From: Chrysemys picta bellii
Taxonomy: Eukaryota
Assembly (NCBI RefSeq): GCF_011386835.1
Contig: NC_088796.1
Span: 101,804,001 to 101,868,000 of the forward strand
Reading direction: 5' to 3'
DNA: 64,000 nucleotides
Shown: piece after piece, positions 7,102 to 63,531 of the stretch
Numbering within the stretch: position 1 is the stretch's first letter
Layout of the letters: the number at the start of each line of letters is the position of its first letter
Position numbers and translations under genes: made by a program
The notes under the pieces: generated by a model
What the model saw: the letters and a program-made list of their open reading frames with translations, nothing else
What the model was told of the DNA's origin: nothing
The model's database searches: none

Positions 7102-7675
7102 ATGATCAGCAGGAGTTTGCTGCAATTTTGCCTCATGCTGCTCTTTTCCAGTGAAATCTCATGTCTGGACTGTAACAGGATTTATGTTCTACAAACCAGA
7201 ATGAACAGCGAGAGTTTAGAGCATCTGGAGAAAATGGGTGGAAACTTTCCCTTCCAATGTCTAAATGAAAGGACAGCTTTCAAGCCCAGAGATATCCTCA
7301 AGATCCGACTGTCCCAGCAAGAGAATGCCAAGGTAGCCATCCAACAGATCCTCCAAGAGCTCTTCCATATCTTTACCAACAATCTCACCCAAGCTGCCTG
7401 GAATGGGACTTCCATAAAGGAATTCCAAAATGGTCTTCACCAGCAGATTGAGAAGCTGGAGACGTGTTTGAGTGCTGAGAAGGGAAAGGAGATAACCTAC
7501 CCAGGAAATGAGAACCTCCTGCTCACCAGCCTCAAACTGAAGACATATTTCCAGACAATCGACGATTTCCTGAAAGAAAAGCAATACAGCCAGTGTGCCT
7601 GGGAGATCATCCGTGTAGAAATATCCAGATGTTTTCCAATTCTCAACATACTCACAAAAAGACTTCAAGATGAAG
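7102..7675 (+). CDS. Type I interferon A1 (IFN-kappa/beta-like), exon 1; 205 aa if spliced to exon 2
   Basis: Signal peptide then SC|LDCN, FPFQCLNE and FLKEKQYSQCAWEIIRVEISRCF type I IFN motifs; NLT and NGT sequons; donor GAAG|GTAC at 7675/7676. Confidence 0.95.
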
Positions 7676-8334
7676 GTACTATATATTGGTTTTTCCTAGA
7701 AAAACTCAAATATTATATGAATAAAACAGCTGAAGAGAGATAGGTCATAATTTTATAATTCTTATTATGTAGGGCCCAATCTTTCTACCATAGTAATTTT
7801 ACCCATACACCTATTTCAAACTCATGTTAATAAAACTGTTTTAGAGTAGCATATATAGTTTAGTGCTTCCTTACCACACACATATTCTGTATGGAAAATA
7901 TACAAATATATCGTAACTGATTACAAATGAAAAAATATCATCCGTTGATAATTAACCATACCAAATATAACTTTGCCCAGTAAGCATCTTAGTAGGGGAA
8001 AAGTTGGCTTGTTGCTGTTTTTAACAACTGCCTAGTAAGAGAAAATTCCAGTCAGGACACCAGAAAATTGATGGTCTGTGCTCACACACTTCTATCCCAC
8101 CATCTAATTCTGCCGGTTACTTCTGCACACAGGGATGGCCAAGACTACTTATTCTGCTTTCCTTCATTCTGTTTATCTCTACATTTCAACAATTTTGGTT
8201 AAAAAAAAATTGTCACAAGATTATAAGTGCAATAAGGCTCAGGATTTATGATTTGACATCTGGTTAGAAAAAGATGGCCTATATTTGGCATTTGAAACTC
8301 TCCATGTTTAAACCATTCCCCTTTTTCATTTCAG
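7676..8334 (+). other. Intron of A1 (659 bp)
   Basis: GT donor and polypyrimidine acceptor TTCCCCTTTTTCATTTCAG, both conserved in paralogs. Confidence 0.8.
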
Positions 8335-8378
8335 CACGTGATGCTTCATGTAATGATGTTATGAAAACAGCTGAATGA
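8335..8378 (+). CDS. A1 exon 2 coding part (tail ARDASCNDVMKTAE*)
   Basis: In frame with the phase-1 donor; TGA at 8376-8378; same-length frame in all four A copies. Confidence 0.7.
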
Positions 8379-8629
8379 AACTACACCTCCACTGGAGTGG
8401 TTCGTCTCTAAGTTGATTCTACAAGCAGTTCCTTTCCAGATTCTTATCAGCCTGTCTTGCATTAAACAAGGGACCAACTCCTACAGAACTCCAATTGCTC
8501 AATTTATATACTACTTGCCATTACCAGATTGATTTACTCACATGAGAAAATGTAAAACAAAAGATATTGCTGAAAATATGCCAGAAGACAATGTAGTATT
8601 TGAACCGAAGAAGAAAAACCTTATGATTT

Positions 8630-9030
8630 CCAAATCATTGATGTTACCCATTTGCTCAGAATTTGCTTTTGGCTGCTCTTAAAAATGAAATCTCACCTCT
8701 GAACTGTAACTGTTATGCTCATTTCAGCATAACAGATGTGAACCAGGTCAACTTCCAAACAAAATAGAAGGATAATTTTCCTCTAAAGTCAGAAAGAAGA
8801 GAGACTTTGTGGCCCCAAAAGGTTCTCAAGTCTTGGCAGAAAGTGACTGCCAAGTGGCCATCCAGGAAATCCTCGAACAGATTTGGTACATCAAGTGTCA
8901 AATTCCTTCTTAATCTCCTTGGAATGATAGCCCCATTAAAGATCCAAACATGGACTCATAAGCAAGTGGAGCTTCTGGAGCCCTGTTTTGCTTCAAGCAT
9001 AAAAAGCAAACAAGAGCATCCCAAATTCTA
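8630..9030 (+). pseudogene. Ghost IFN relic G2
   Basis: Nucleotide homology to exon 1 from the signal peptide (GCTGCTCTT...GAAATCTCA...CTGAACTGTAAC) through VAIQEILEQ and ELLEPCF; multiple stops and indels. Confidence 0.8.
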
Positions 9031-9059
9031 GATCATGTATAATTAAGTGCACTGGAATT

Positions 9060-9260
9060 ATAAACTATTGCTACTATATATTCTCCTCCTGCACTGTGAA
9101 AATATTTCAGATAATTTTACTGGATTTGTAACAGTATTGTGGTGTTGATCTACTTTTATTTATTGATAATATTTATGTATTGCTCTTATTTATCATTTTC
9201 AGATGTGTTTATAATATTTATAAATAAATATTTATTTATACAAAATAGCAGCCTACTGCA
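9060..9260 (+). promoter_or_regulatory. AU-rich element cluster and poly(A) signal
   Basis: Multiple ATTTA/TATTTAT motifs; AATAAA at 9223-9228. Equivalent blocks follow every ghost. Confidence 0.65.
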
Positions 9261-9683
9261 GTAGTGATTTGTATTAATTATATATTTAAAAAAAGCAAAG
9301 ACCCAATAACAATCTTATCTTGTTCTGCCTTAAGACTCCAGTTCAGCAAAGGACTTGTCAACATTTGGCTAAGGTTAAGTGCACGAGTCTTATGTTCATG
9401 TGTGGAAGTACCTTGTAAACATAAACCCTGATAATTAATTTTACCAGTCCAACAGACCACAAACCACAACCTCAGTTCTGAAGCTTTTGCATTTCTGCCC
9501 ATTACTAGATTACTTTTTCCCCCAGCATTTGTAGTTGTGGGTATATGGTGCAGTAGCTCATTGTGATAAAATAGGCTGGATTGGTAAGGGCTAATTAAAG
9601 GGGTGATAGATAGATGGGCATTCCGAGGGGAAGACTTTAGGCTGTCACAATACAAAATTGCTTGCCCCTCCTTCCCACTAATG

Positions 9684-12256: not shown

Positions 12257-12312
12257 CTCAAGATACTGTCACTACTGAGGTTAAAACAGCTGGAGGATAC
12301 TGCACCATGTAG
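12257..12312 (+). pseudogene. Orphan B-type IFN exon 2 (exon 1 deleted)
   Basis: 11710-12560 is homologous to intron and exon 2 of the 38634 gene (39323-40140); acceptor ATTTCATTCCAG intact. Confidence 0.75.
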
Positions 12313-12569
12313 TGGAATCCCTTCAATCTGCAGATTCCTCCCAGAGTGACTTCTAGCACTCCATAACGCTTGACCTTGAATTATGCAATTGACTCTCTAT
12401 TATACAATTTCAACTGCACAAATTACATTTTATGTAATTATAGTCTGTTCATTTACTCAGTGTTTAAAATGCAAAATGAAGAATATTGATGCAAAAAATT
12501 ACCAGACAATTGTAATTTTAAAAGAAAGGGTTGGGACCTTAAACATTGTTGACATTATGTGTTTGGTAT

Positions 12570-13246
12570 TGTAGCACAGCGCAGACTCACCCCTGCGGCG
12601 CCTCCTGCTAGTCATCCTTGGGAATTAGCTTTGACCCAGGAGCGCCCTCTGCAGGCTGGTGATCTGCTTGCCATTGGCCCCCCACATCCCTCCCACTGCC
12701 CCTGTCTTGGGTGCTGCCCCCCCCCCCCCCCCCCAGCAGTATCCCACTATCCCTGGGTTTCCCCACCCACTATCCCCACTTTGCCTCAGTTTTGGCTGCT
12801 GCCCAGTCTCCATCTAGCCCCCGTTCACTGGGGCAGACTGCAGTATCAGCCACTCATCATTGGCAAATCAGTTTGGACTGGCTGCCTTTACCCACCTTCA
12901 GGCTGCCCCTCTGCAAGCCCAATACCTAAGACTAGGTCCTGCAGCCTGGGGAGTTGCTGGCCCAGGACTTCCCAGCTCCTAAGGCCTTTCCCCAACCCTG
13001 CCTCACTCTAGGTCCTCAGGTGAGTTCCCCAGCAGCCAGGCCTGTCTCCCTCTCCAGTCAGAGAGAGAGGCTTTCTGCTTAAGCTCCTGGCTCAAGCCTT
13101 TATAGGGCCAGCTGGTCCCTGATTGGGGCATGGCCCCAACTGAGCCTGCTTCCTCCCAATCAGCCCAGGGGTCTTGCCCTTCCAGAGCCCTCCTCCAGGG
13201 CAGTTTTAAACCTCTCAGGGCAGGAGCAGGTGACCACCCCACTACA
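12570..13246 (-). mobile_element. Solo LTR (677 bp)
   Basis: TGTAG...CTACA termini, perfect 5-bp TSD GGTAT, minus-strand TATAAA near 13100, empty site at ~40140. Confidence 0.85.
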
Positions 13247-13254
13247 GGTATATA

Positions 13255-13795
13255 TTTCTGTGGTACAACACTTCTCTGATCAAATCTAATCTTGGAACCC
13301 TAACATGCAGCATAACCACAGTATAACAGCATAATACATGTGAGCTGGAACAGCTTCCAAATAAAGAGGTGTGGATAATTTTCCTGTAAGATCAGAATGA
13401 AGAGAGAGATTTCAGGTGGCCTCAATACGTTCTCAAGCCATGAATGTCCCTGAAGGAAAATGCCCCGGTGAGAATCCAGGAACTCTTCCAACATGTATCC
13501 TGCTGCTTTTGCAAAAATCTCTCCCAAGCTACCTCGGGCAGGAGTTCCATTCAGAGAGTCCAACCTAGACTCATTAGCCAGCTGGGCATCTGGAGACATG
13601 TTTGGTTGCAGTGATGGAAAATGGGACTCTCTGACCAGGAAGAAAGGACCTAGAGCTTGCAAGGATGAAAGTGAAGAGATACCAATTATTTCCAAGCAGA
13701 GAAGCCGTTCAGCCTCAGTGCTGGCAAGAGAATCCAAGTGGAATTAAGTTTTCAACTCTAGGACAAACTCACAAAGAAGTTTAGAAAATTAAAAT
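13255..13795 (+). pseudogene. Ghost IFN relic G3, near full length, no post-stop intron
   Basis: Recognisable HLETCL, RMKVKRY, a CAWEIIRVEI-like tract and DKLTKK; runs straight into an AU-rich 3' region. Confidence 0.8.
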
Positions 13796-15019
13796 ACCAA
13801 CCTTTTAAAAATACTAACTGAAATCAATTAAAATTTTATACATGATTTAAAATGAGATGCCGTGGAATTTTAAAAACTGTTGCTACTATTTGTTCTATTT
13901 TTGCACTGCGGAAATATTTTAATATCGTTTTACAAGATTTGTAACATTATATTTATGTCAGTCTACTACTTATTTAGTGCTCTTATTTATGTATTTATCA
14001 TAGTTTTGTATTATTTATAAATAAAGTCTTATTTTATACAAAATGGCAACCTATAGTGGTAGTGATTTGTATTAAATGCCTATTTAACCAAACCAAACAA
14101 ACAAAAACAAGAAAGAGAACCAAAAAAAACCAAACCCCTGTAATTGTTCAGCCTTAAAGCCCCAACTCCAGAAAGTACTTTTGCACGTGACTAACAAAGT
14201 ATGTGACCCGTCCCACTGATATTAGTGCTTCAATTTGGGAACATACTTAAATACATTGATGAATCAGTGTCCCAGTTTGCAGTACTTCCATATTCAAATA
14301 AATAGTTACTGAAAGATAATTAGTCTTTCCATTTTCACAAACCACGCACCACACCAGAACTCTGACTCCTTTTCCAATTCTACCAAGTTACTTGTCCCCC
14401 ACAAAAACTTGTCAATTTGGATGTTTGATGTAATAGACGGTTGTGTTGGAAAAGGCTAGATTGGTGTCCTTTCTCCCACTAATCAAGATTGCATGCACCC
14501 CTTAACACATACCAATTAAGTTTGTTTGTAATTAGCCTGCCCATACCCCATCAATCAGATGTGTGCATTCACATACCCTTTCCCCCCACCAATATGAAAT
14601 CAGGTTTCTACATTTCCAGCAACTATCCACAGTATATTTACTAGCACTGCCCCCAATATTAAGTCTGTGCTCACATGCACGCTTATCAGGTTTGTGGCCC
14701 TCCACCTGATCCCATTACCTCTGTGTGCGCCCAAGCTAAATTCATTCTTGGGTGTACACCACAAACAAAATTACATCTGAATAATGAGAGCAGGAATAGG
14801 CCATTTGAATTAGGATTATCAAAGTTTCTCTTTGCCACCTCTACAATGCAGCTCCCCATTTAGTGGAATACGTCAGTCAGTTACTACCCAGGAAAAATAC
14901 AGAATTCTTCTGAAAAAGTCTAACAACCCCAAATCTATTCAGTGCTGGAGAAGGGGGGGACTATTTCCATTCATTCCATCAGACCTTTAATAAAAGAAAG
15001 GACAATGCTGAGCAGAGAA

Positions 15020-19372: not shown

Positions 19373-19946
19373 ATGATCAGCAGGAGTTTGCTGCAATTTT
19401 GCCTCATGCTGCTCTTCTCCAGTGAAATCTCATGTCTGGACTGTAACAGGATTTATGTTCTACAAACCAGAATGAACAGCGAGAGTTTGGAGCATCTGGA
19501 GAAAATGGGTGGAAACTTTCCCTTCCAATGTCTAAATGAAAGGACAGCTTTCAAGCCCAGAGATATCCTCAAGATCCGACTGTCCCAGCAAGAGAATGCC
19601 AAGGTAGCCATCCAGCAGATCCTCCAAGAGCTCTTCCATATCTTTACCAACAATCTCACCCAAGCTGCCTGGAATGGGACTTCCATAAAGGAATTCCAAA
19701 ATGGTCTTCACCAGCAGATTGAGAAGCTGGAGACGTGTTTGAGTGCTGAGAAGGGAAAGGAGATAACCTACCCAGGAAATGAAAACTTCCTGCTCACCAG
19801 CCTCAAACTGAAGAGATATTTCCAGACAATCGACGATTTCCTGAAAGAAAAGCAATACAGCAAGTGTGCCTGGGAGATCATCCGTGTAGAAATATCCAGA
19901 TGTTTTCCAATTCTCAACATACTCACAAAAAGACTTCAAGATGAAG
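19373..19946 (+). CDS. Type I interferon A2, exon 1; 205 aa if spliced
   Basis: As A1 with 3 substitutions (L>F, T>R, Q>K); donor GAAG|GTAC at 19946/19947. Confidence 0.95.
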
Positions 19947-20605
19947 GTACCATATATTGGTTTTTCCTAGAAAAACTCAAATATTATATGAATAAAACAG
20001 CTGAAGAGAGATAGGTCATAATTTTATAATTCTTATTATGTAGGGCCCAATCTTTCTACCATAGTAATTTTACCCATACACCTATTTCAAACTCATGTTA
20101 ATAAAACTGTTTTAGAGTAGCATATATAGTTTAGTGCTTCCTTACCACACACATATTCTGTATGGAAAATATACAAATATATCGTAACTGATTACAAATG
20201 AAAAAATATCATCCGTTGATAATTAACCATACCAAATATAACTTTGCCCAGTAAGCATCTTAGTAGGGGAAAAGTTGGCTTGTTGCTGTTTTTAACAACT
20301 GCCTAGTAAGAGAAAATTCCAGTCAGGACACCAGAAAATTGATGGTCTGTGCTCACACACTTCTATCCCACCATCTAATTCTGCCGGTTACTTCTGCACA
20401 CAGGGATGGCCAAGACTACTTATTCTGCTTTCCTTCATTCTGTTTACCTCTACATTTCAACAATTTTGGTTAAAAAAAAATTGTCACAAGATTATAAGTG
20501 CAATAAGGCTCAGGATTTATGATTTGACATCTGGTTAGAAAAAGATGGCCTATATTTGGCATTTGAAACTCTCCATGTTTAAACCATTCCCCTTTTTCAT
20601 TTCAG

Positions 20606-20649
20606 CACGTGATGCTTCATGTAATGATGTTATGAAAACAGCTGAATGA
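20606..20649 (+). CDS. A2 exon 2 coding part (ARDASCNDVMKTAE*)
   Basis: Acceptor TTCATTTCAG ends at 20605; identical to A1 exon 2. Confidence 0.7.
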
Positions 20650-20899
20650 AACTACACCTCCACTGGAGTGGTTCGTCTCTAAGTTGATTCTACAAGCAGT
20701 TCCTTTCCAGATTCTTATCAGCCTGTCTTGCATTAAACAAGGGACCAACTCCTACAGAACTCCAATTGCTCAATTTATATACTACTTGCCATTACCAGAT
20801 TGATTTACTCACATGAGAAAATGTAAAACAAAAGATATTGCTGAAAATATGCCAGAAGACAATGTAGTATTTGAACCGAAGAAGAAAAACCTTATGATT

Positions 20900-21300
20900 T
20901 CCAAATCATTGATGTTACCCATTTGCTCAGAATTTGCTTTTGGCTGCTCTTAAAAATGAAATCTCACCTCTGAACTGTAACTGTTATGCTCATTTCAGCA
21001 TAACAGATGTGAACCAGGTCAACTTCCAAACAAAATAGAAGGATAATTTTCCTCTAAAGTCAGAAAGAAGAGAGACTTTGTGGCCCCAAAAGGTTCTCAA
21101 GTCTTGGCAGAAAGTGACTGCCAAGTGGCCATCCAGGAAATCCTCGAACAGATTTGGTACATCAAGTGTCAAATTCCTTCTTAATCTCCTTGGAATGATA
21201 GCCCCATTAAAGATCCAAACATGGACTCATAAGCAAGTGGAGCTTCTGGAGCCCTGTTTTGCTTCAAGCATAAAAAGCAAACAAGAGCATCCCAAATTCT
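20900..21300 (+). pseudogene. Ghost IFN relic G4
   Basis: Duplicate of G2. Confidence 0.8.
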
Positions 21301-21953
21301 AAATCATGTATAATTAAGTGCACTGGAATTATAAACTATTGCTACTATATATTCTCCTCCTGCACTGTGAAAATATTTCAGATAATTTTACTGGATTTGT
21401 AACAGTATTGTGGTGTTGATCTACTTGTATGTATTGATAATATTTATGTATTGCTCTTATTTATCATTTTCAGATGTGTTTATAATATTTATAAATAAAT
21501 ATTTATTTATACAAAATAGCAGCCTACTGCAGTAGTGATTTGTATTAATTAAATATTTTAAAAAAGCAAAGACCCAATAACAATCTTATCTTGTTCTGCC
21601 TTAAGACTCCAGTTCAGCAAAGGACTTGTCAACATTTGGCTAAGGTTAAGTGCACGAGTCTTATGTTCACGTGTGGAAGTACCTTGTAAACATAAACCCT
21701 GATAATTAATTTTACCAGTCCAACAGACCACAAACCACAACCTCAGTTCTGAAGCTTTTGCATTTCTGCCCATTACTAGATTACTTTTTCCCCCAGCATT
21801 TGTAGTTGTGGGTATATGGTGCAGTAGCTCATTGTGATAAAATAGGCTGGATTGGTAAGGGCTAATTAAAGGGGTGATAGATAGATGGGCATTCCAAGGG
21901 GAAGACTTCAGGCTGTCACAATACAAAATTGCTTGCCCCTCCTTCCCACTAAT

Positions 21954-25093: not shown

Positions 25094-25149
25094 CTCAAGA
25101 TACTGTCACTACTGAGGTTAAAACAGCTGGAGGATACTGCACCATGTAG
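25094..25149 (+). pseudogene. Orphan B-type IFN exon 2 (second copy)
   Basis: Duplicate of 12257-12312 with intact acceptor. Confidence 0.75.
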
Positions 25150-25406
25150 TGGAATCCCTTCAATCTGCAGATTCCTCCCAGAGTGACTTCTAGCACTCCA
25201 TAACGCTTGACCTTGAATTATGCAATTGACTCTCTATTATACAATTTCAACTGCACAAATTACATTTTATGTAATTATAGTCTGTTCATTTACTCAGTGT
25301 TTAAAATGCAAAATGAAGAATATTGATGCAAAAAATTACCAGACAATTGTAATTTTAAAAGAAAGGGTTGGGACCTTGAACATTGTTGACATTATGTGTT
25401 TGGTAT

Positions 25407-26075
25407 TGTAGCACAGCGCAGACTCAACCCTGCGACGCCTCCTGCTGGTCATCCTTGGGAATTAGCTTTGACCCAGGAGCGCCCTCTGCAGGCTGGTGAT
25501 CTGCTTGCCATTGGCCCCCCACATCCCTCCCACTGCCCCTGTCTTGGGTGCTGCCCCCCACCCAGCAGTATCCCACTATCCCTGGGTTTCCCCACCCACT
25601 ATCCCCACTTTGCCTCAGTTTTGGCTGCTGCCCAGTCTCCATCTAGCCCCCGTTCACTGGGGCAGACTGCAGTATCAGCCACTCATCATTGGCAAATCAG
25701 TTTGGACTGGCTGCCTTTACCCACCTTCAGGCTGCCCCTCTGCAAGCCCAATACCTAAGACTAGGTCCTGCAGCCTGGGGAGTTGCTGGCCCAGGACTTC
25801 CCAGCTCCTAAGGCCTTTCCCCAACCCTGCCTCACTCTAGGTCCTCAGGTGAGTTCCCCAGCAGCCAGGCCTGTCTCCCTCTCCAGTCAGAGAGAGAGGC
25901 TTTCTGCTTAAGCTCCTGGCTCAAGCCTTTATAGGGCCAGCTGGTCCCTGATTGGGGCATGGCCCCAACTGAGCCTGCTTCCTCCCAATCAGCCCAGGGG
26001 TCTTGCCCTTCCAGAGCCCTCCTCCAGGGCAGTTTTAAACCTCTCAGGGCAGGAGCAGGTGACCACCTCACTACA
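25407..26075 (-). mobile_element. Solo LTR (duplicate of 12570)
   Basis: TG...CA termini with GGTAT TSD. Confidence 0.85.
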
Positions 26076-26084
26076 GGTATATAT

Positions 26085-26625
26085 TTGTGTGGTACAACAC
26101 TTCTCTGATCAAATCTAATCTTGGAACCCTAACATGCAGCATAACCACAGTATAACAGCATAATACATGTGAGCTGGAACAGCTTCCAAATAAAGAGGTG
26201 TGGATAATTTTCCTGTAAGATCAGAATGAAGAGAGAGATTTCAGGTGGCCTCAATACGTTCTCAAGCCATGAATGTCCCTGAAGGAAAATGCCCCGGTGA
26301 GAATCCAGGAACTCTTCCAACATGTATCCTGCTGCTTTTGCAGAAACCTCTCCCAAGCTACCTCGGGCAGGAGTTCCATTCAGAGAGTCCAACCTAGACT
26401 CATTAGCCAGCTGGGCATCTGGAGACATGTTTGGTTGCAGTGATGGAAAATGGGACTCTCTGACCAGGAAGAAAGGACCTAGAGCTTGCAAGGATGAAAG
26501 TGAAGAGATACCAATTATTTCCTAGCAGAGAAGCCGTTCAGCCTCAGTGCTGGCAAGAGAATCCAAGTGGAATTAAGTTTTCAACTCTAGGACAAACTCA
26601 CAAAGAAGTTTAGAAAATTAAAATA
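26085..26625 (+). pseudogene. Ghost IFN relic G5
   Basis: Duplicate of G3. Confidence 0.8.
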
Positions 26626-27389
26626 CCAACCTTTTAAAAATACTAACTGAAATCAATTAAAATTTTATACATGATTTAAAATGAGATGCCGTGGAATTTT
26701 AAAAACTGTTGCTGCTATTTGTTCTATTTTTGCACTGCGGAAATATTTTAATATCATTTTACAAGATTTGTAACATTATATTTGTCAGTCTAGTACTTAT
26801 TTAGTGCTCTTATTTATGTATTTATCATAGTTATGTATTATTTATAAATAAAGTATTATTTTATACAAAATGGCAACCTATAGTGGTAGTGATTTGTATT
26901 AAATACTTATTTAACCAAACCAAACAAACAAAAACAAGAAAGAGAACCAAAAAAAACCCCTGTAATTGTTCAGCCTTAAAGCCCCAACTCCAGAAAGTAC
27001 ATTTCCAGCAACTATCCACAGTATATTTACTAGCACTGCCCCCAATATTAAGTCTGTGCTCACATGCACGCTTATCAGGTTTGTGGCCCTCCGCCTGATC
27101 CCATTACCTCTGTGTGCGCCCAAGCTAAATTCATTCTTGGGTGTACACCACAAACAAAATTACATCTGAATAATGAGAGCAGGAATAGGCCATTTGAATT
27201 AAGATTATCAAAGTTTCTCTTTGCCACCTCTACAATGCAGCTCCCCATTTAGTGGAATACGTCAGTCAGTTACTACCCAGGAAAAATACAGAATTCTTCT
27301 GAAAAAGTCTAACAACCCCAAATCTATTCAGTGCTGGGGAAGGGGGGGACTATTTCCATTCATTCCATCAGACCTTTAATAAAAGAAAG

Positions 27390-31806: not shown

Positions 31807-32379
31807 ATGATCAGCAGGAGTTTGCTGCAATTTTGCCTCATGCTGCTCTTCTCCAGTGAAATCTCATGTCTGGACTGTAACAGGATTTATGTTCTACAAA
31901 CCAGAATGAACAGTGAGAGTTTAGAGCATCTGGAGAAAATGGGTGGAAACTTTCCCTTCCAATGTCTAAATGAAAGGACAGCTTTCAAGACCAGAGATAT
32001 CCTCAAGATCCGACTGTCCCAGCAAGAGAATGCAAAGGTAGCCATCCAGCAGATCCTCCAAGAGCTCTTCCATATCTTTACCAACAATCTCACCCAAGCT
32101 GCCTGGAATGGAACTTCCATAAAGGAATTCCAAAATGGTCTTCACCAGCAGATTGAGAAGCTGGAGAGGTGTTTGAGTGCTGAGAAGGGAAAGGAGATAA
32201 CCTACCCAGGAAATGAGAACCTCCTGCTCACCAGCCTCAAACTGAAGAGATATTTCCAGACAATCGACGATTTCCTGAAAGAAAAGCAATACAGTCAGTG
32301 TGCCTGGGAGATCATCCGTGTGGAAATATCCAGATGTTTCCTCATGCTCAACATACTCACAAAGAGACTTGAAAATTAA
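31807..32379 (+). CDS. Type I interferon A3 (190 aa)
   Basis: Complete ORF with IFN motifs ending KRLEN-TAA, followed directly by G|GTAC donor. Confidence 0.95.
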   Translation: MISRSLLQFCLMLLFSSEISCLDCNRIYVLQTRMNSESLEHLEKMGGNFPFQCLNERTAFKTRDILKIRLSQQENAKVAIQQILQELFHIFTNNLTQAAWNGTSIKEFQNGLHQQIEKLERCLSAEKGKEITYPGNENLLLTSLKLKRYFQTIDDFLKEKQYSQCAWEIIRVEISRCFLMLNILTKRLEN

Positions 32380-32380
32380 G

Positions 32381-33034
32381 GTACCATATTTGTATTTTTC
32401 CTCAGGAAACTAAATCATATTAGTTCAATAAAACAGCAGAAGAGAGATGGGGATAATTTTAAAACTCGTATTATATAGGGCCCAACACTTCTCCCATAGT
32501 AATTTCAGCTATTTCAAATTCATGTTAATAAAACCGTTTTAGAGTAGCATATAATTTAGTGCTTTCATTCTACACACACAATATTCTGTATGAAAAACAT
32601 AGAAATACATCATAACTGCTAACTAATGACAAAATATCATGAGTGATAACTAACCAAAATGAATATAACTTTGCCCAGTAAGTGTCTTAGTTGGGGAAGA
32701 GAAAAGCAAAAACATCCCTTCAACAACTGCCTAGTAAGACAACATTCGAGTCAGGACACCAGAAAACTGGGGGTCAGTGACCACATTCTTCTATCCCACC
32801 ATTGAATTCTGACAGTGACTTCCGCTCATAAGGACGGCCAAGGGTACTTATTCTGCTTTTCTTTGTGCTGTTTACCACTAAGTTAAGCTGCTTTAGTGGG
32901 AAAAAAAAGGTTGTAACAGGGTGATAAGTTCACAAAGGCTCAGGATTTATCATTTGATATCAGCTTAGAAAAACATACACTATATTTGAAATTTGACACG
33001 CTGTGTGTTTCAACCATTCCCTTTTTCATTCCAG
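32381..33034 (+). other. 3'-UTR intron of A3 (654 bp)
   Basis: Donor 1 nt after the stop; acceptor TTCCCTTTTTCATTCCAG. Confidence 0.8.
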
Positions 33035-33349
33035 CACGTGATGCTTCAAGTAATGATATTATGAAAACTACTGACTGATACTGCACCTCCACTGGAGTCC
33101 TTCGTCTCTAGTTGATTCTACAAGCAGTAGACTTTCGAGACTACCTTTCGAGACTCCTGTTAGTTCATCTTGCATTAACCCCGGGACTAACTCTACTACA
33201 AAAGTCTAAATGCGCATTTTACTTACTTCTTGATATTGCTGGATTGATTCACTCACATGAGAAAGTGGAAAACAGAAGATATTGCTCCAAACAAGCCAGA
33301 GTATTTGATAAGAAGGGGAAAATCTTCATGATTTCTTAATCATCATTGA

Positions 33350-33720
33350 TATTATGCGTTGGCTCAGAATTTGCTTGGGGCTGCTCTTAAAAATGAAATC
33401 ATACCTCTGAACTGTAACTGGCTTCATTTCAGCATTACAGATGTGAACTAGGACAATTTTCAAACAAAATGGAAGGATAATTTTCCTGCAAGGTCATCTC
33501 AAAATGGTTCTTAAACCCAAAGAGACCCAGAAAGAGACTGCCAAAGTGGCCACCCAGGAGATCCCCTAACAGATTTCCTACATCTCATGCCAAATTCCCT
33601 CCCTCGCTGCCTGGAATGACAGTCCCATTCAAAGATCCAAACATGGACTCAGAAGAAAATGGAGCTTCTGGAGAGGCTTGTTTCACTGCAAGGATAAAAA
33701 AAAACGTACAAGCATATCCC
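33350..33720 (+). pseudogene. Ghost IFN relic G6
   Basis: Paralog of G2 (AAAGAGACTGCCAAAGTGGCC...CAGGAGATCC; GCTGCCTGGAATGAC). Confidence 0.75.
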
Positions 33721-34247
33721 AGTCTATAGGTCATTTATAATTGGGTGTACTGGAATTTTAAGCTAGTGCGACTCTATATTCTCTTCCTGCACTGTGAAAA
33801 TATTTTCAGATCATTTTACTATATGTGTAAAAGTATGTTTATGATCCAATTTCTATTTATTTATAATATTTATTGCTGTTATTTATCTTTTTCAGAGTTA
33901 TTTTATCATATTTATAAATACATATTTATTTATACAAAATAGGAACCTAAACCAGTAGTGATATGTATTAATAAGATTTTTTTTAAAAAAAGATTCAATA
34001 AAAATCTTCTCTTGTTCTGACTTATGACTCCAGTTCAGCAAAGGAATTGTAAACATTTGTCTAACTTTAAGTACAGGAGCCTCCCATTCACATGAGTGGT
34101 TAACGTTGGGTATCTGCTGAAGCACACAGACTATAATCCCTGATTCAACAGTGGCTCTATAAGAAAACTAGGTATGGTAATTACTTTTACCACTGCAACA
34201 GACCACACACCACAGCCTCAACTCTGCAGCTTTTGCATTTCTGCCTC

Positions 34248-38633: not shown

Positions 38634-39209
38634 ATGACCACCAGGTGTTTGCTGCATGTTTGCCTTGTACTGCTCTTCTGCACTGAAATCTCATCTCGAC
38701 TCTGTACCATGCTTCACTTCCAGCAGAACAAAGTGAACAAAGAAAGCTTGGAGCTTCTGCAGAAAATGAGCGGAAATTTCCCCTCAAAATGCATAAATGA
38801 AAGGGCAGCTTTCAAGCCCACCCAGAATGTTGTTGAACTTTCAGTGTCCCAGAAGGAGAATGCCAAGGTGGCAATTCTAGAGATCCTCCAAGAGATCTTC
38901 AACATCTTTAGCAAAAACCTCACCCAAAGTGCCTGGGATGGGACTTCCATAGTCAGGTTCCAAAGTGGACTTTACCAGCAAATTCAGCGGCTGGAGACAT
39001 GTTTGAGAACACAGATGGAGAAGGAATTAACCAACCCAGAAAGTGAGGAACTCCAGCTCACCAGTCGAAGAGTGAAAAAATACTTTCAGGAGATAGATGC
39101 TTTCCTGAAAGAAAAACAATACAGCCTTTGTGCCTGGGAGATTATTCGTGTGGAAATACCCAGATGTTTTGTACTTATTGACAAACTCACTAGAAGGCTT
39201 AGTAACTAA
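38634..39209 (+). CDS. Type I interferon B (191 aa)
   Basis: Signal peptide, FPSKCINE and FLKEKQYSLCAWEIIRVEIPRCF; TAA followed by G|GTAC donor. Confidence 0.95.
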   Translation: MTTRCLLHVCLVLLFCTEISSRLCTMLHFQQNKVNKESLELLQKMSGNFPSKCINERAAFKPTQNVVELSVSQKENAKVAILEILQEIFNIFSKNLTQSAWDGTSIVRFQSGLYQQIQRLETCLRTQMEKELTNPESEELQLTSRRVKKYFQEIDAFLKEKQYSLCAWEIIRVEIPRCFVLIDKLTRRLSN

Positions 39210-39210
39210 G

Positions 39211-39841
39211 GTACAGTACAAATCTTTTCCTTGGAGTAAAAGAATTAATATTAGTATGAATCATACAGCTGAACAGAGATAGCGGATATTTTATAACTCT
39301 GCTTATATCGGGCCTGATCATCTTCTACAGGATCAGTGGCCAAATAGCAACTGATTTCCATGGCAGCAGCTTCCGGCTCTTCCCATCCTCTGGAAATGGA
39401 TTTGCAATTACATGGATTTCTTTTTCTGTGTTTCTACTTTTATTTAGGTTTGTGATTCTTCATAATCTCCCACATATCAGGTGCTGTTATGCACTACTTA
39501 ATTGGCAGTCCATGCAACAAAGTACATATATTTCGAATCCTTAGCCACCTCACCAGTATTTTGGTCATCAAATAATGATACTTCCCCTCCACCCGCAAGG
39601 TACTCTGACTTCTACATATGTAGTGTGTTTCTATTATGGTCATGGTTGCTATTTATTAATCTGTCCTCATCATATACCACAGCTTGCAAAGTTTCCTAGG
39701 GACATTTATAAAATATATTAACTGAGCATAAGACTTGTGAGATTATGAGTAGAAAGTTATTTTCATTTAATGTATTGAGATTAATACAATGGAAAATTAA
39801 TTTTTCCCTTTGTGTTTCAACCAAATTTCATTTCATTCCAG
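39211..39841 (+). other. 3'-UTR intron of gene B (631 bp)
   Basis: Donor after the stop; acceptor TTTCATTTCATTCCAG; the following exon is homologous to A exon 2. Confidence 0.75.
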
Positions 39842-40144
39842 GTGAGGATGCAGCGACTACAGAGGTTAAAACAGTTGGATGAAATTGTACCATGTAGTGG
39901 ATTCCCTCCTCTCTACTGATTCTTCCCACAGTGACTTCTAAGACTCCATAATGCTTGATCTTCTATTATGCAATACGCTCACTTCATAATGAAATTCCAA
40001 CTGCCCATATTACAATTTATGTGATAATACTCTGTTGATTTACTCAAAGTTTAAATTGCAAAATGAAGGATATCGATGCAAAAAAATTACAAGAAAATTA
40101 AAGGGTTAGACCTTAAACATTGTTGACATTATGGGTTTGCTATA

Positions 40145-40650
40145 TAGTTCTGTGGTTCAACTCTTCTCTGATCAAATCTCATCTCTGAACTGTAACATGC
40201 AGCTTAACCACAGTATAACAGCATAACAAATGTGAACTGGAAAAACATTCAACGAAAAAAGATGTGCATAGTTTTCCTCTAAGTCAAGCCCCGAGTGTCC
40301 CTGAAGGGGTATGGCAAGGTGGCAATCCAGGAAATCTTCCAACATATTTCCAGCTGCTTTTGCAAAAATCTCTCCAAAACTACCTGAGGTGAGAGTTCCA
40401 TTCAGATATTCCAACATAGACTCATCAGCAAGTTGGGCATCTGGAGACATGTTTGGTTGCAGTGATGGAAAATGGGACACTCTGACCAGGAGGTAAGGAC
40501 CTACAGTTTCCCAGGTTGAAAGTGAAGAGATACCAATTATTTCATAAAAGACTAGCAGTTCAGCCTCAGGGCTAGCAGGAGAATCCATGTGGAATTATGG
40601 AGTTTTCAAATATAGGACAAACTCACAAAGAAGTTTAAGAAATTTAAATA
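40145..40650 (+). pseudogene. Ghost IFN relic G7, near full length
   Basis: Paralog of G3 without the LTR; VAIQEIFQ, HLETCL, LKVKRY, DKLTKK. Confidence 0.8.
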
Positions 40651-41817
40651 CCAACATTTTTAGAAGTACTAACCGAAATCAAGTAATATTTTATACATGA
40701 TTTAAAATGAGATGTTTGGAATTTTAAAAGCTGTTGTTACTATTTATTCTATCTGTGCACTATGAAAATATTTTCAGATCATTTTATGATATTTGTAACA
40801 GGATATTTATGTCAGTCTATTATTTATTTATTGTTCCTATTTATGTATTTATCATAGACATTTGTTACTTATTAATAAATAATTATTTTATATAAAATGG
40901 CAACCTATAGTAGTAATGATTTGAATTAAATACCTATTGTACCAAAAAGGAGAATAAAAAAAGAAAACCCTGTAATTGTACAACCTTAAAACCCCAATTC
41001 CAGAGATTACTTTTGCACGTGACTAACTTAAAGTATGTGAGCCATCCCACTGATGTTAGTGCTTCCAGTTAGGAACATGTTTAAATACATTGATGAATCA
41101 GTGTCCCAGTTCGCAGTAATTCCATATTAAAAATAATTGTTACAGAATGATAATTAGCCTTTCCATCCAAACAGACCACACCTGAATACCTGAACTTTGC
41201 CACCTTTTACTATTCTATTTTTTACCAGGTTATTTCCCCCTCAAAAAAACTTGTCAATTTGGATGTTTGGTGTAGTAGACGGTTGTGTTGGAAGAGGCTA
41301 GATTGGTGCTCTTTCCCTCAGTAAGCAAGATAGCATGCACCCCTTAACACACACCAATTGTTAGTTTGTAATTAGCCTGCCCATACCTCATCAATTATCT
41401 GCATTCACATAACCTCTCCCCCAACCAAAATCAAGTCAGGTTTGTAAGTATCCAGCACCTACCCACAATACATTTACTAGCACTGCCCCCAATATTAAGT
41501 CTGTGCTCTCATGCACTCTTATCAGGTTAGTGGCCCACTGCTTGATCTCATTACCTCTGTGTGCGCCCAGGCTAAATTCATTCTTGGGTGTACACCACAA
41601 ACAAAATTACATGTGAAAAATAACAGCAGGAATAGGCCATTTTGTATTAGGACTATCAAAGTTTCTCATTGTCACCTCTAAAACGCAGCTCCCCATTTGG
41701 TGGAATACGTCAGTCAGAAACTACCCAGGAAGAATACGGAATTCTTCTGAAAAAGTCTAACAACCCCAAACCTATTCAGCTCTGGGGGGAAATTATTCCC
41801 CTTCATTCCATCACACC

Positions 41818-46978: not shown

Positions 46979-47552
46979 ATGATCAGCAGGAGTTTGCTGC
47001 AATTTTGCCTCATGCTGCTCTTTTCCAGTGAAATCTCATGTCTGGACTGTAACAGGATTTATGTTCTACAAACCAGAATGAACAGTGAGAGTTTAGAGCA
47101 TCTGGAGAAAATGGGTGGAAACTTTCCCTTTCAATGTCTAAATGAAAGGACAGCTTTCAAGCCCAGAGATATCCTCAAGATCCGACTGTCCCAGCAAGAG
47201 AATGCCAAGGTAGCCATCCAACAGATCCTCCAAGAGCTCTTCCATATCTTTAACAACAATCTCACCCAAGCTGCCTGGAATGGGACTTCCATAAAGGAAT
47301 TCCAAAATGGTCTTCACCAGCAGATTGAGAAGCTGGGGACGTGTTTGAGTGCTGAGAAAGGAAAGGAGATAACCTACCCAGGAAATGAGAACCTCCTGCT
47401 CACCAGCCTCAAACTGAAGAGATACTTCCAAATAATAGACGATTTCCTGAAAGAAAAGAAATACAGCCAGTGTGCCTGGGAGATTATCCGTGCAGAAATA
47501 TCCAGATGTTTTCTAATTCTTGATGTACTGACAGATCGGCTTAAAAATGAAG
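46979..47552 (+). CDS. Type I interferon A4, exon 1; 205 aa if spliced
   Basis: IFN motifs; donor GAAG|GTAC at 47552/47553. Confidence 0.93.
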
Positions 47553-48144
47553 GTACCATATTTGCATTTTTCTAGGGAAACTAAATCGTATTGTTTCAAT
47601 AAAACAACTGAAGAGAGATGGATGGTAGTTTTATAACTTGTATTACGTAGGTCCCAATCTTTCTTCCATAGTAATTTCAGCTATTTCAAACACATGTTAA
47701 TAAAACTGTTTTAGAGTAGCATATAGTTTAGTGCTTTCATACCACACACGCAATATTCCATGTGAAAAACATAGAAATACATCATAACTGCTAACTAAAA
47801 AAGAACAGCGAGATGCCTCCCTCCAACAACTGCCTAATAAAACAACATTCCAGTCACGACCACCAGAAAACGGAGGGTCTGTGTCCACACACTTCAATCC
47901 CTCCATCGAATTCTGCCAGTTAACACTGCACATAGGATGGTCAAGGGTACTTATTCTGTTTTGGTTTTTTTTGTTCGGTTTACCCCTACATTTCAAGAGT
48001 TTTAGTAAAAGAAAATTGTCACAAGATCATAAGTGCATTAAGGCTCAAGGTTTATGATTTGACATCTGGTTAGAAAAACAGGAACTATATTTGACATTTG
48101 AAACTGTGTATGTATGTTTGAATCATTCTCCTTTTTTATTCCAG

Positions 48145-48188
48145 CATGTGATACTTCAGGTAATGATATTATGAAAACTGCTGAGTGA
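48145..48188 (+). CDS. A4 exon 2 coding part (ACDTSGNDIMKTAE*)
   Basis: Acceptor CTCCTTTTTTATTCCAG ends at 48144; same-length frame as A1. Confidence 0.7.
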
Positions 48189-48449
48189 AACTGCACCTCC
48201 ACTGGAGTCCTTTGTCTCTAAGTTGATTCTACAAGCAGTACCTTTCTAGACTCTTATCAGTCCACCCTGCATTAAACAAGGGACCAACTCTTACAGAACT
48301 CCAATTGCACAATTTATATACTTCTTGCCATTAACAGATTGATTTACTCACATGAGAAAATGTAAAACAAAAGATATTGCTGAAAATATGCCAGAAGACA
48401 AGGTAATATTTGAACCGAATGAGAAAAACCTTACGATTTCCAAATCATT

Positions 48450-61422: not shown

Positions 61423-62159
61423 TCAAATAAATTTGTTAGTCTGTAAGGTGCCACAAGTACTCCTCGTTCTTTTTGCTGATACAGACTAACACGGCTACCA
61501 CTCTGAAATCTGAAAACTAAATGATTTTTTAAACAAAAAACAGCACTATGGGTTCCATGTTTAGTGTATCTGACTCCATCTCCAACACACTCAATTTTCA
61601 AGTAGAAAAAAGTCTTAACATCCAGCAATGCAAAAGAATATAATAGCCATCTGCCCCACCCCTTCCTCCCGTAGAAGTTGAGTCTCTGCAAGACTATTAT
61701 GAATAAAAGTTTAATTTTGGTCACTAGAGTTCACATAACTTTGATAATTATAATTATTTGTTGCATCACAATTACTCGAAACTGGAAATTTTAACTAGTG
61801 TAAAGAAACTTTCTAAGTCTGGACTGTTGTAAATTGTAATTATCCCCAATGGAAAAAAAGGTATCTTTACAATTAAAAGAGGTTCCTAAGTAATTTAGAA
61901 ACATGATTAGTTAAACCAGGGTGAAGAAGAAAAGAAAATATTACCAACTAATGTAAAGATGGGTAGAGACTCAAAGACAAGCCCACAGGAGCATGCTGAG
62001 ATTATGTGTTCCATAGGATATATTACGAATATTATCTGGAAAGAGGATTTTTGTTTCTCTTGGACTTGCTGTTATTATAATACAGAAGAAAGTTTTCTGT
62101 GGGTCTATGTGCTCTATGCTGACATCTGCATGTAGACAGTTCTGAGTAATCTATTCTAA

Positions 62160-62964: not shown

Positions 62965-63531
62965 ATGACCACCCGGAGTTTTCTGCACATTTGCCTTGTC
63001 CTGCTCTTCACTGAAAACTCATCTGTGGACTGTAACATGCTTCACTTCCAGCAAAACAAAGTGAACCAAGCTAGTTTACAGCTTCTGGAAAAAATGGGAG
63101 GACAATTTCCTGTGCAATGTCTAAATGAAAATTCAAACTTCATATCCCTCCAGAATGTTCTCAGCTCCAGAGAGTTCCAGAAGGAGAATGCCATGGTGGC
63201 AATCCAGGAGATCCTCCAACAGATCTTCAATATCTTCAGCAAAAGTCACATCCAAACTGCCTGGGATAGGAGTTCCATAGTTGCATTCCAAAATGGACTT
63301 CACCAGCAAATTGAGCTGCTGAAGACATGGTTCGATGGAGAAAAAAAGATGGAGACAACCTACCCACAAAATGAGGACTTCACCAGGCTGAAAGTGAAGA
63401 AATATTTCCATGTGGTAGACAATTTCCTGAAAGAAAAGCAATACAGCCTGTGTGCCTGGGAGATCATCCGTGAGGAAATGAGAAGATGTTTTCTGATTAT
63501 GGACCAACTCACAAAAAGGCTTAAAAATTAA
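62965..63531 (+). CDS. Type I interferon C (188 aa)
   Basis: Signal peptide, VDCN, FPVQCLNE and FLKEKQYSLCAWEIIREEMRRCF; TAA followed by G|GTAT donor; acceptor probably beyond the window end. Confidence 0.95.
   Translation: MTTRSFLHICLVLLFTENSSVDCNMLHFQQNKVNQASLQLLEKMGGQFPVQCLNENSNFISLQNVLSSREFQKENAMVAIQEILQQIFNIFSKSHIQTAWDRSSIVAFQNGLHQQIELLKTWFDGEKKMETTYPQNEDFTRLKVKKYFHVVDNFLKEKQYSLCAWEIIREEMRRCFLIMDQLTKRLKN

Follow-up and report, generated by a model that had tools for sequence, protein, structure and literature searches.

The question raised by this locus is why type I interferon (IFN) genes of a turtle are trailed by decayed IFN copies, and whether the live genes make use of what lies behind the dead ones. 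We analyzed a 64-kb stretch of DNA from Chrysemys picta bellii (the window), which carries type I IFN genes arrayed in tandem along the + strand. Intact first-exon ORFs fall into the 7102 class (starts at 7102, 19373, 31807, and 46979; 87–98% alike), a second class (start at 38634), and a third class, "C" (start at 62965). A tblastn and ORF survey of the window added a frameshifted gene (53112–53686) and a gene fragment (1867–2167), and self-comparison revealed a super-unit of ~12.3 kb in three copies. As expected of type I IFNs, the live genes combine a full-length match to the interferon alpha/beta domain PF00143 with a signal peptide; all relatives of the 7102 and 62965 products contain this domain and are named interferon beta-, epsilon-, or kappa-like at NCBI. 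About 1.5–2.9 kb upstream of gene C lies an inverted repeat (60090–60621 and 60942–61473) of 532 nt and 96% identity.

The displayed positions belong to unit 2, in which the live exon 1 (7102–7675, + strand) is an ORF of 191 codons plus 1 nt without a stop ahead of the donor GAAG^GTAC (the caret marks the splice position). It is followed by a post-CDS intron of the IFN-kappa type (7676–8334, + strand, 659 nt), whose donor and acceptor are kept across turtles and crocodilians, and by the start of exon 2 (8335–8622, + strand), which opens with a 14-codon tail to a TGA at 8376–8378 and continues as non-coding sequence with an ATTAAA at 8461. All live genes share a donor (T/G/C)AAG^GTA at or just past the stop, and the acceptor is conserved with a pyrimidine tract, i.e., they show the sequence features of an IFN-kappa-type post-stop intron. 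This intron is conserved in Gavialis, Alligator, Pelodiscus, Emydura, gecko, and anole, and the C-type gene likewise has a post-stop intron and exon 2 (Emydura locus L010); the donor context TAAG^GTA is present in turtle, crocodilian, and gecko genes. The post-stop intron is not new, as it is annotated in turtles and has been published for chicken IFN-kappa, where a 3′ UTR intron follows the stop, "similar to the human homologue" (PMC5457445). A recent survey that treats the HACD4 cluster also states that some "intronless" amniote IFNs have reintroduced introns (PMC13176653).

In the 7102-type copies lacking a stop before the donor, splicing is predicted to append a 14-residue tail ending at the TGA. 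NCBI models of 205 aa that end in this exon-2 tail, and hence need the splice, exist in at least nine turtle species (from Malaclemys, Emys, Trachemys, Gopherus, Mauremys, Chelonoidis, Chelonia, Caretta, and Natator). An Alligator gene (L007, 6540–7320) has no stop before the donor either; its spliced end would be STSTNVMKTSE, resembling the turtle tail ARDASCNDVMKTAE, and because of this likeness the coding exon-2 tail may date to the turtle–crocodilian split. In Anolis, the last 55 nt of exon 1 together with the donor are tandemly duplicated within the intron (L005, 7082–7136).

What, then, are the sequences further downstream? Because tblastn matches were modest, we took the coding sequences of 11 live IFN genes (Chrysemys A, B, and C, Emydura A and B, Pelodiscus, Gavialis, Alligator, gecko, and anole), leaving out the decayed copies, here called ghosts, and made an nhmmer DNA profile from them. 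It returned nine extra sense-strand matches in the window with E-values from 1e-32 to 1e-62: 2187–2609, 8651–8991, 13263–13786, 20922–21262, 26082–26616, 33352–33700, 40128–40639, 48456–48821, and 54564–55166 (units 1 to 9, respectively). Each lies within ~35 nt of a position at which an earlier note, written from the letters of this DNA, had placed an IFN relic. Live coding sequences and their own ghosts share 63–65% identity over about 360–375 nt (blastn, E 3e-22 to 6e-39), and every ghost has stops in every sense frame, so that significant collinear homology coincides with a broken frame, as in an IFN-derived pseudogene. Judged by sequence, these relics do derive from type I IFN coding sequence; they have sat in the terminal-exon region of multi-copy "interferon beta-like" genes since before the turtle–crocodilian divergence and were copied at each unit duplication.

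The ghost of unit 2 (8623–8991, + strand) extends from a relic of the ATG to about profile position 374 (nhmmer E 5.6e-32; blastn 63% over 359 nt, E 3e-22). Like the other 7102-type ghosts, it matches the profile from position 8 and ends at ~375–390, the C-terminal third being deleted; the same deletion is found in Emydura. Near-full-length ghosts are of the 38634 type only (13263, 26082, 40128, and 54564), with the motif RMKVKRY/RLKVKRY at 13662, 26491, and 40513 and DKLTKK at 13762, 26591, and 40616. The distance from exon-2 start to ghost, previously given as ~300 nt, amounts to 286–317 nt for the exons beginning at 8335, 20606, 33035, 39842, and 48145, whereas an insertion of ~680 nt extends it to ~1000 nt at 12257 and 25094.

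The other eight units, all on the + strand, vary this scheme. Four contain an intact gene: unit 4 (19373–21600; intron 19947–20605, block 21312–21600), unit 6 (31807–34021; TAA before the donor, exon 2 from 33035, block 33739–34021), unit 7 (38634–40971; 191-aa gene with donor TAAG^GTAC, intron 39211–39841, near-full-length ghost, block 40706–40971), and unit 8 (46979–49133; exon 2 from 48145, block 48858–49133), where "block" denotes the AU-rich sequence described below. Unit 3 (12257–14111; block 13851–14111) has no exon 1 and consists of the exon-2 start, the insertion, ghost, and block; unit 5 (25094–26938; block 26680–26938) is a copy of it, 98.5% alike. In both, exon 1 is gone along with ~112 nt at the beginning of the intron, and their insertion (12569–13249 and 25406–26078) is GC-rich and probably a mobile element. 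In unit 1 (2187–2929), a 5′-truncated ghost (profile 144–570) and its block follow a live gene reduced to a partial pseudogene (1867–2167); the first ~60 nt of the intron are joined straight to the ghost at profile position 144 (2168–2228), a deletion of ~1.5 kb having taken the rest of the intron, exon 2, and the 5′ part of the ghost. In unit 9 (53112–55588), the gene is frameshifted, the acceptor AG is lost near 54254, and the block (55307–55588) is the weakest of all, with ATTAAA for AATAAA at the conserved place. Antisense ORFs of 120–145 aa are open across three ghosts (13300–13737, 26129–26491, and 40172–40588, minus strand). Live genes carry the same antisense ORF, too (e.g., 7261–7668, minus strand), and the Emydura ghosts are without it; these ORFs are probably a compositional leftover.

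Each ghost is followed by the AU-rich block. In unit 2 it spans 9041–9329 (+ strand) and holds seven ATTTA pentamers, two UUAUUUA(U/A)(U/A) nonamers, an AATAAA at 9223–9228, and a conserved GU-rich stretch downstream. Within the window, clusters of at least five ATTTA per 200 nt occur only behind eight of the ghosts (the ninth has four), compared with 0.12 such clusters per window in shuffled sequence. A search of the window with a block profile gave exactly one match behind each of the nine ghosts and none elsewhere. Eight of the nine blocks carry a conserved AATAAA, unit 9 being the exception. The conserved stretch comprises the hexamer, a CA-containing cleavage zone, and a GU-rich element, which together with the clustered AUUUA and nonamers gives the block the sequence features of a poly(A) site (AAUAAA, GU/U-rich downstream) and of a class II AU-rich element. 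Hexamer and 50 nt downstream are conserved to crocodilians. An A-rich run ~60 nt past the AATAAA in turtle units, considered as a candidate poly(A)-tail remnant of a retrocopy and absent in the gharial, is too far away for a normal cleavage site.

We consider it likely, on the strength of comparisons between genomes, that the live gene reads through the ghost and uses the block for its 3′ end. The live gene would be transcribed from its own promoter and spliced from the conserved donor at or after the stop to the acceptor ~600–660 nt downstream; the transcript would then cross ~300 nt plus the dead coding sequence and terminate at the conserved AATAAA on its far side. The mRNA-instability elements and the cleavage site would come from the AU-rich block, and the ghost body would be neutral filler within a 3′ UTR of 0.85–1.05 kb. 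Between the 7102 unit of Chrysemys and Gavialis, identity is 72% in the CDS, 53% in the intron, 49% in exon 2 before the ghost, 56% in the ghost, 64% in the AU-rich part, 75% in the poly(A) signal plus 70 nt, and 41–45% further downstream. From turtle to gharial, the poly(A) block is hence conserved like the live CDS (75% vs 72%), whereas intron, ghost body, and flanks range from 41 to 56%; that the block is kept at CDS level while the ghost body drifts at background rate supports its use by the live gene well. Further support comes from Pelodiscus, which dropped the ghost body yet retained the block, and from the fact that no other poly(A) hexamer between stop and block is conserved. The ghost body can be deleted and the block apparently cannot, and the sole intact gene able to benefit from the conserved poly(A) site is the upstream one. 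These indirect lines of evidence favor the suggestion of the earlier note that live genes may use poly(A) site and AU-rich elements on the far side of the ghost.

Within turtles the contrast is modest (86% identity in the block vs 73–81% in the flanks), because turtles evolve slowly. Unit 9, with its frameshifted gene, has lost acceptor AG and hexamer and has the lowest block score; since blocks behind units lacking a live exon 1 are still well preserved, block decay after gene death rests on this one unit and is anecdotal.

The live genes might instead end upstream, either unspliced at the AATAAA at 7720 or 7829 or spliced at the ATTAAA at 8461, leaving ghost and block as a dead duplicated neighbor. 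Such intronic AATAAA hexamers stand 45 and 154 nt past the donor in all four 7102-type genes, at 7720 and 7829 and the paralogous places, and close to the donor in one sea-turtle contig, and unspliced read-through products of 198–213 aa are among the NCBI models as well. However, the three hexamers of unit 2 are missing in Emydura, Pelodiscus, the 38634-type gene, and the gharial, and a transcript ending there would have no AU-rich cluster. Moreover, the conservation of the block at CDS level over the turtle–crocodilian distance, which neutral flanks do not share, and its retention in Pelodiscus after removal of the ghost body speak against it, and we regard upstream ends as the regular ones as unlikely. 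Because the 7102-type introns carry AATAAA close to the donor, unspliced short transcripts may occur, and intronic polyadenylation is a possible minor or alternative route in these copies. Exon 2 had been described as containing ATTAAA and no AATAAA. In all five units with an intact gene, no AATAAA was found between exon-2 start and block, and in unit 7 none from the stop until 40874, but the introns of the 7102 type do hold AATAAA.

A second alternative takes ghost and block as a separate non-coding unit, a pseudogene RNA whose own regulatory role would explain the 3′ conservation. The resemblance of the block to a working poly(A) site is the sole point in its favor; there is no promoter-like homology before any ghost, and the ghost body evolves like intron or spacer and is deletable, which makes this reading very improbable. 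We thus retain termination of the live gene at the block as the best explanation.

The window translates at 54261–54365 to DATTLDLLKQLNQTALWNGIPPPLPPPTVTSETP followed by a stop, a sequence identical to the end of NCBI model P0081 (Mauremys reevesii, 226 aa) and almost so to that of P0075. In models from Mauremys, Gopherus (P0079), and Macrochelys (P0004), a 7102-type exon 1 is thus connected with exon 2 or CDS of the next unit, a hint of either read-through from unit to unit or chimeric annotation; if these models are real, transcription sometimes passes the block. The four sequencing runs that cover the stretch look like low-coverage DNA: their depth stays even across the upstream spacer, and none joins 7675 to 8335. 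Joints in the reads, considered as splices, turned out to be contigs of paralogous ghosts. A skip from 7154–7179 to 8772–8804 belongs to one contig in all four runs, which stem from two organisms; since the loose end of this contig agrees with the beginning of the 40128-type ghost, the skip reflects a paralogous ghost, neither splicing nor a deletion. Contigs retrieved by exact protein look-up as candidate transcripts (L001, L009, and L011) were genomic or too short.

To date the unit, loci around annotated IFNs of six other species were compared with Chrysemys. The whole unit is collinear in the side-necked turtle Emydura, in the gharial (Gavialis), and in Alligator. Emydura ghosts match with E-values from 1e-39 to 1e-48, each with a block. 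The softshell turtle Pelodiscus has donor, acceptor, a ~70-nt 5′ stub of the ghost, and the block in both of its units, the ghost body being deleted. Gavialis and Alligator retain donor, acceptor, and exon-2 start, and in a search restricted to exon-2 stretches they yielded short ghost remnants between acceptor and block (E 2.8e-5 and 7e-6; scores 11.4 and 13.3, where the best of 200 shuffles scored 1.8). Single-sequence comparisons showed collinear order and included ghost-to-ghost homology with E 1.2e-5. The block was recovered in all four genera with a profile made from Chrysemys only (E ~1e-50 in Emydura, 6e-33 and 1.5e-20 in Pelodiscus, 6e-16 in Gavialis, and 7e-17 in Alligator). Beyond these, a profile search found no ghost in the 3′ UTR of the gecko, there is no ghost or block within 5 kb of the C-type gene at Emydura L010, and word-based protein searches had no bird protein among their results. 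An N-terminal IFN fragment in Anolis (L005, 8124–8242, E 8e-6) was considered as a ghost; it lies downstream of that gene's poly(A) signal (AATAAA) and is therefore a separate relic. Absence of the ghost from squamates may be secondary, as its loss by deletion is documented in Pelodiscus.

A maximum-likelihood tree of ghosts and live genes was computed from profile positions 15–375, leaving out the 121-nt fragment at 1867. All ghosts form one clade (ultrafast bootstrap 85, to be read with long-branch attraction among pseudogenes in mind), and its subclades (support 98 and 100) match the live classes that they trail; each live class includes a crocodilian gene. Constraining the ghosts of each class to join the live genes that they trail lowers the log-likelihood by 22.3 units (AU p = 0.017), which rejects an independent origin beside each live class. 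Tree and cross-species results together indicate that the ghost predates the turtle–crocodilian split and that gene and ghost were duplicated as one unit. Of the amplified unit envisaged in the earlier note, an intron-bearing gene plus an intronless neighbor, the pairing of gene and ghost is upheld by monophyly, mirrored subclades, and collinearity, but a free-standing neighbor finds no backing in promoter homology; the age assumed for the unit was far too young, given its collinearity in turtles and crocodilians.

The edges of the ghost bear on how it came to lie there. Its homology to live genes begins about at the ATG (6–15 nt after it), and a promoter and 5′ UTR profile matched nothing before any ghost, its matches in ghosts being confined to their first 35–45 coding nt. 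As in a retrocopy, promoter and upstream homology to the parent is absent, although 5′ truncation is needed to account for the missing 5′ UTR; homology into flanks or introns of the parent, expected of an unprocessed tandem duplicate, was not found in the ghosts. By eye, the sequence after the ghost stop shows only short motif resemblances, both to the intron start and to exon 2. Two further ideas were dropped: the intron as the decayed first 3′ UTR (best score of intron vs ghost 3′ UTR 3.7, shuffle maximum 8.9), and homology of the ghost 3′ flank to the 5′ end of the intron, where a match seen by eye (ACCAACATTTTT) found no support from an intron-5′-end profile, which had no match in ghost flanks.

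The block may always have been the host gene's own 3′ end, the ghost being a promoter-less IFN fragment (a 5′-truncated retrocopy or local duplicate) that landed in the host 3′ UTR, with nothing captured. Such an insertion fits the start of ghost homology 6–15 nt past the ATG and the lack of promoter or 5′ UTR homology ahead of it, as well as the finding that gecko, anole, and the C-type gene share intron and exon-2 start and have no detectable ghost; in the anole, exon 2 reaches an AU-rich stretch and an AATAAA within ~460 nt. Yet the block starts 35–70 nt past the last codon of full-length ghosts, as their own 3′ UTR would, and the block profile finds nothing in exon 2 of anole, gecko, or the C-type gene, so that no host-type ancestor of the block has been identified. 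We therefore see insertion as possible but somewhat doubtful; it would leave the present-day function the same as in the preferred reading and differ in origin alone. The block may have begun either as the 3′ UTR of the ghost (capture) or as that of the host (insertion). A bearing of the locus on intron loss in amniote type I IFNs, which had also been proposed, is not supported: the intron is of the known IFN-kappa type (PMC5457445) and occurs in gecko, anole, and the C-type gene as well, and as the ghost may have arisen either way, the locus adds little on how amniote IFNs lost or regained introns.

Parts of this architecture belong to kinds already known, namely the IFN-kappa-type 3′ intron and the pseudogene-bearing 3′ UTR. 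We know of no embedded IFN relic described in exon 2 of chicken or human IFN-kappa-type genes, and the literature searched contains no mention of an IFN relic in an IFN 3′ UTR. Known cases of read-through or conjoined tandem duplicates have an upstream copy that takes its 3′ end from the downstream one. The present locus resembles these in having two tandem paralogous coding sequences in one presumed transcription unit, the downstream copy decayed and its 3′ signals retained; unlike them, the arrangement is fixed, is at least as old as the turtle–crocodilian split, was amplified as a unit, and has a downstream copy without detectable promoter. Control by AU-rich elements is established for the mRNAs of mammalian IFN-beta and IFN-alpha. 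The turtle block likewise has clustered AUUUA and UUAUUUA(U/A)(U/A) nonamers just before the poly(A) signal, but here a dead coding sequence precedes them, the stop would be ~0.7–0.9 kb away once the RNA is spliced, and their destabilizing role is putative. The IFN-kappa-type genes of chicken and human (PMC5457445) share with the genes studied here a donor that coincides with or closely follows the stop and a second exon most of which is not translated; a difference is that some copies here would continue beyond the former stop and take a 14-residue tail from exon 2. One survey divides the type I IFN clusters of reptiles at the HACD4 locus into single-copy IFN-III/C and multi-copy IFN-IV/D (PMC13176653, citing Chen et al. 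2022). The array studied here is the same kind of multi-copy cluster, while the searched text of that survey lacks the words UTR, untranslated, exon, and relic (PMC13176653).

One far-reaching scenario, which we put forward as speculative and rather improbable, is that the multi-copy IFN genes of archelosaurs took an mRNA-instability and polyadenylation module from a dead paralogue before turtles and crocodilians split, and that the post-stop intron now acts as a switch. If so, spliced RNA would have a long, ghost-bearing, AU-rich 3′ UTR and be short-lived, and RNA polyadenylated in the intron would be without AU-rich elements, more stable, and endowed with another C-terminal tail in the stop-less copies. 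For annotation, the locus is a warning, since this architecture is the source of chimeric and alternative models in several turtle genomes.

Amniote type I IFN genes are usually described as simple intronless units. The working unit of turtles and crocodilians would be composite, consisting of a coding exon, a post-stop intron, and a terminal exon with a fossil IFN and a deeply conserved AU-rich poly(A) module. If transcripts confirm it, the reliance of this gene on 3′ signals behind a dead paralogue would be both old and stable, and the sequence to use in studies of IFN mRNA stability in reptiles would be defined.
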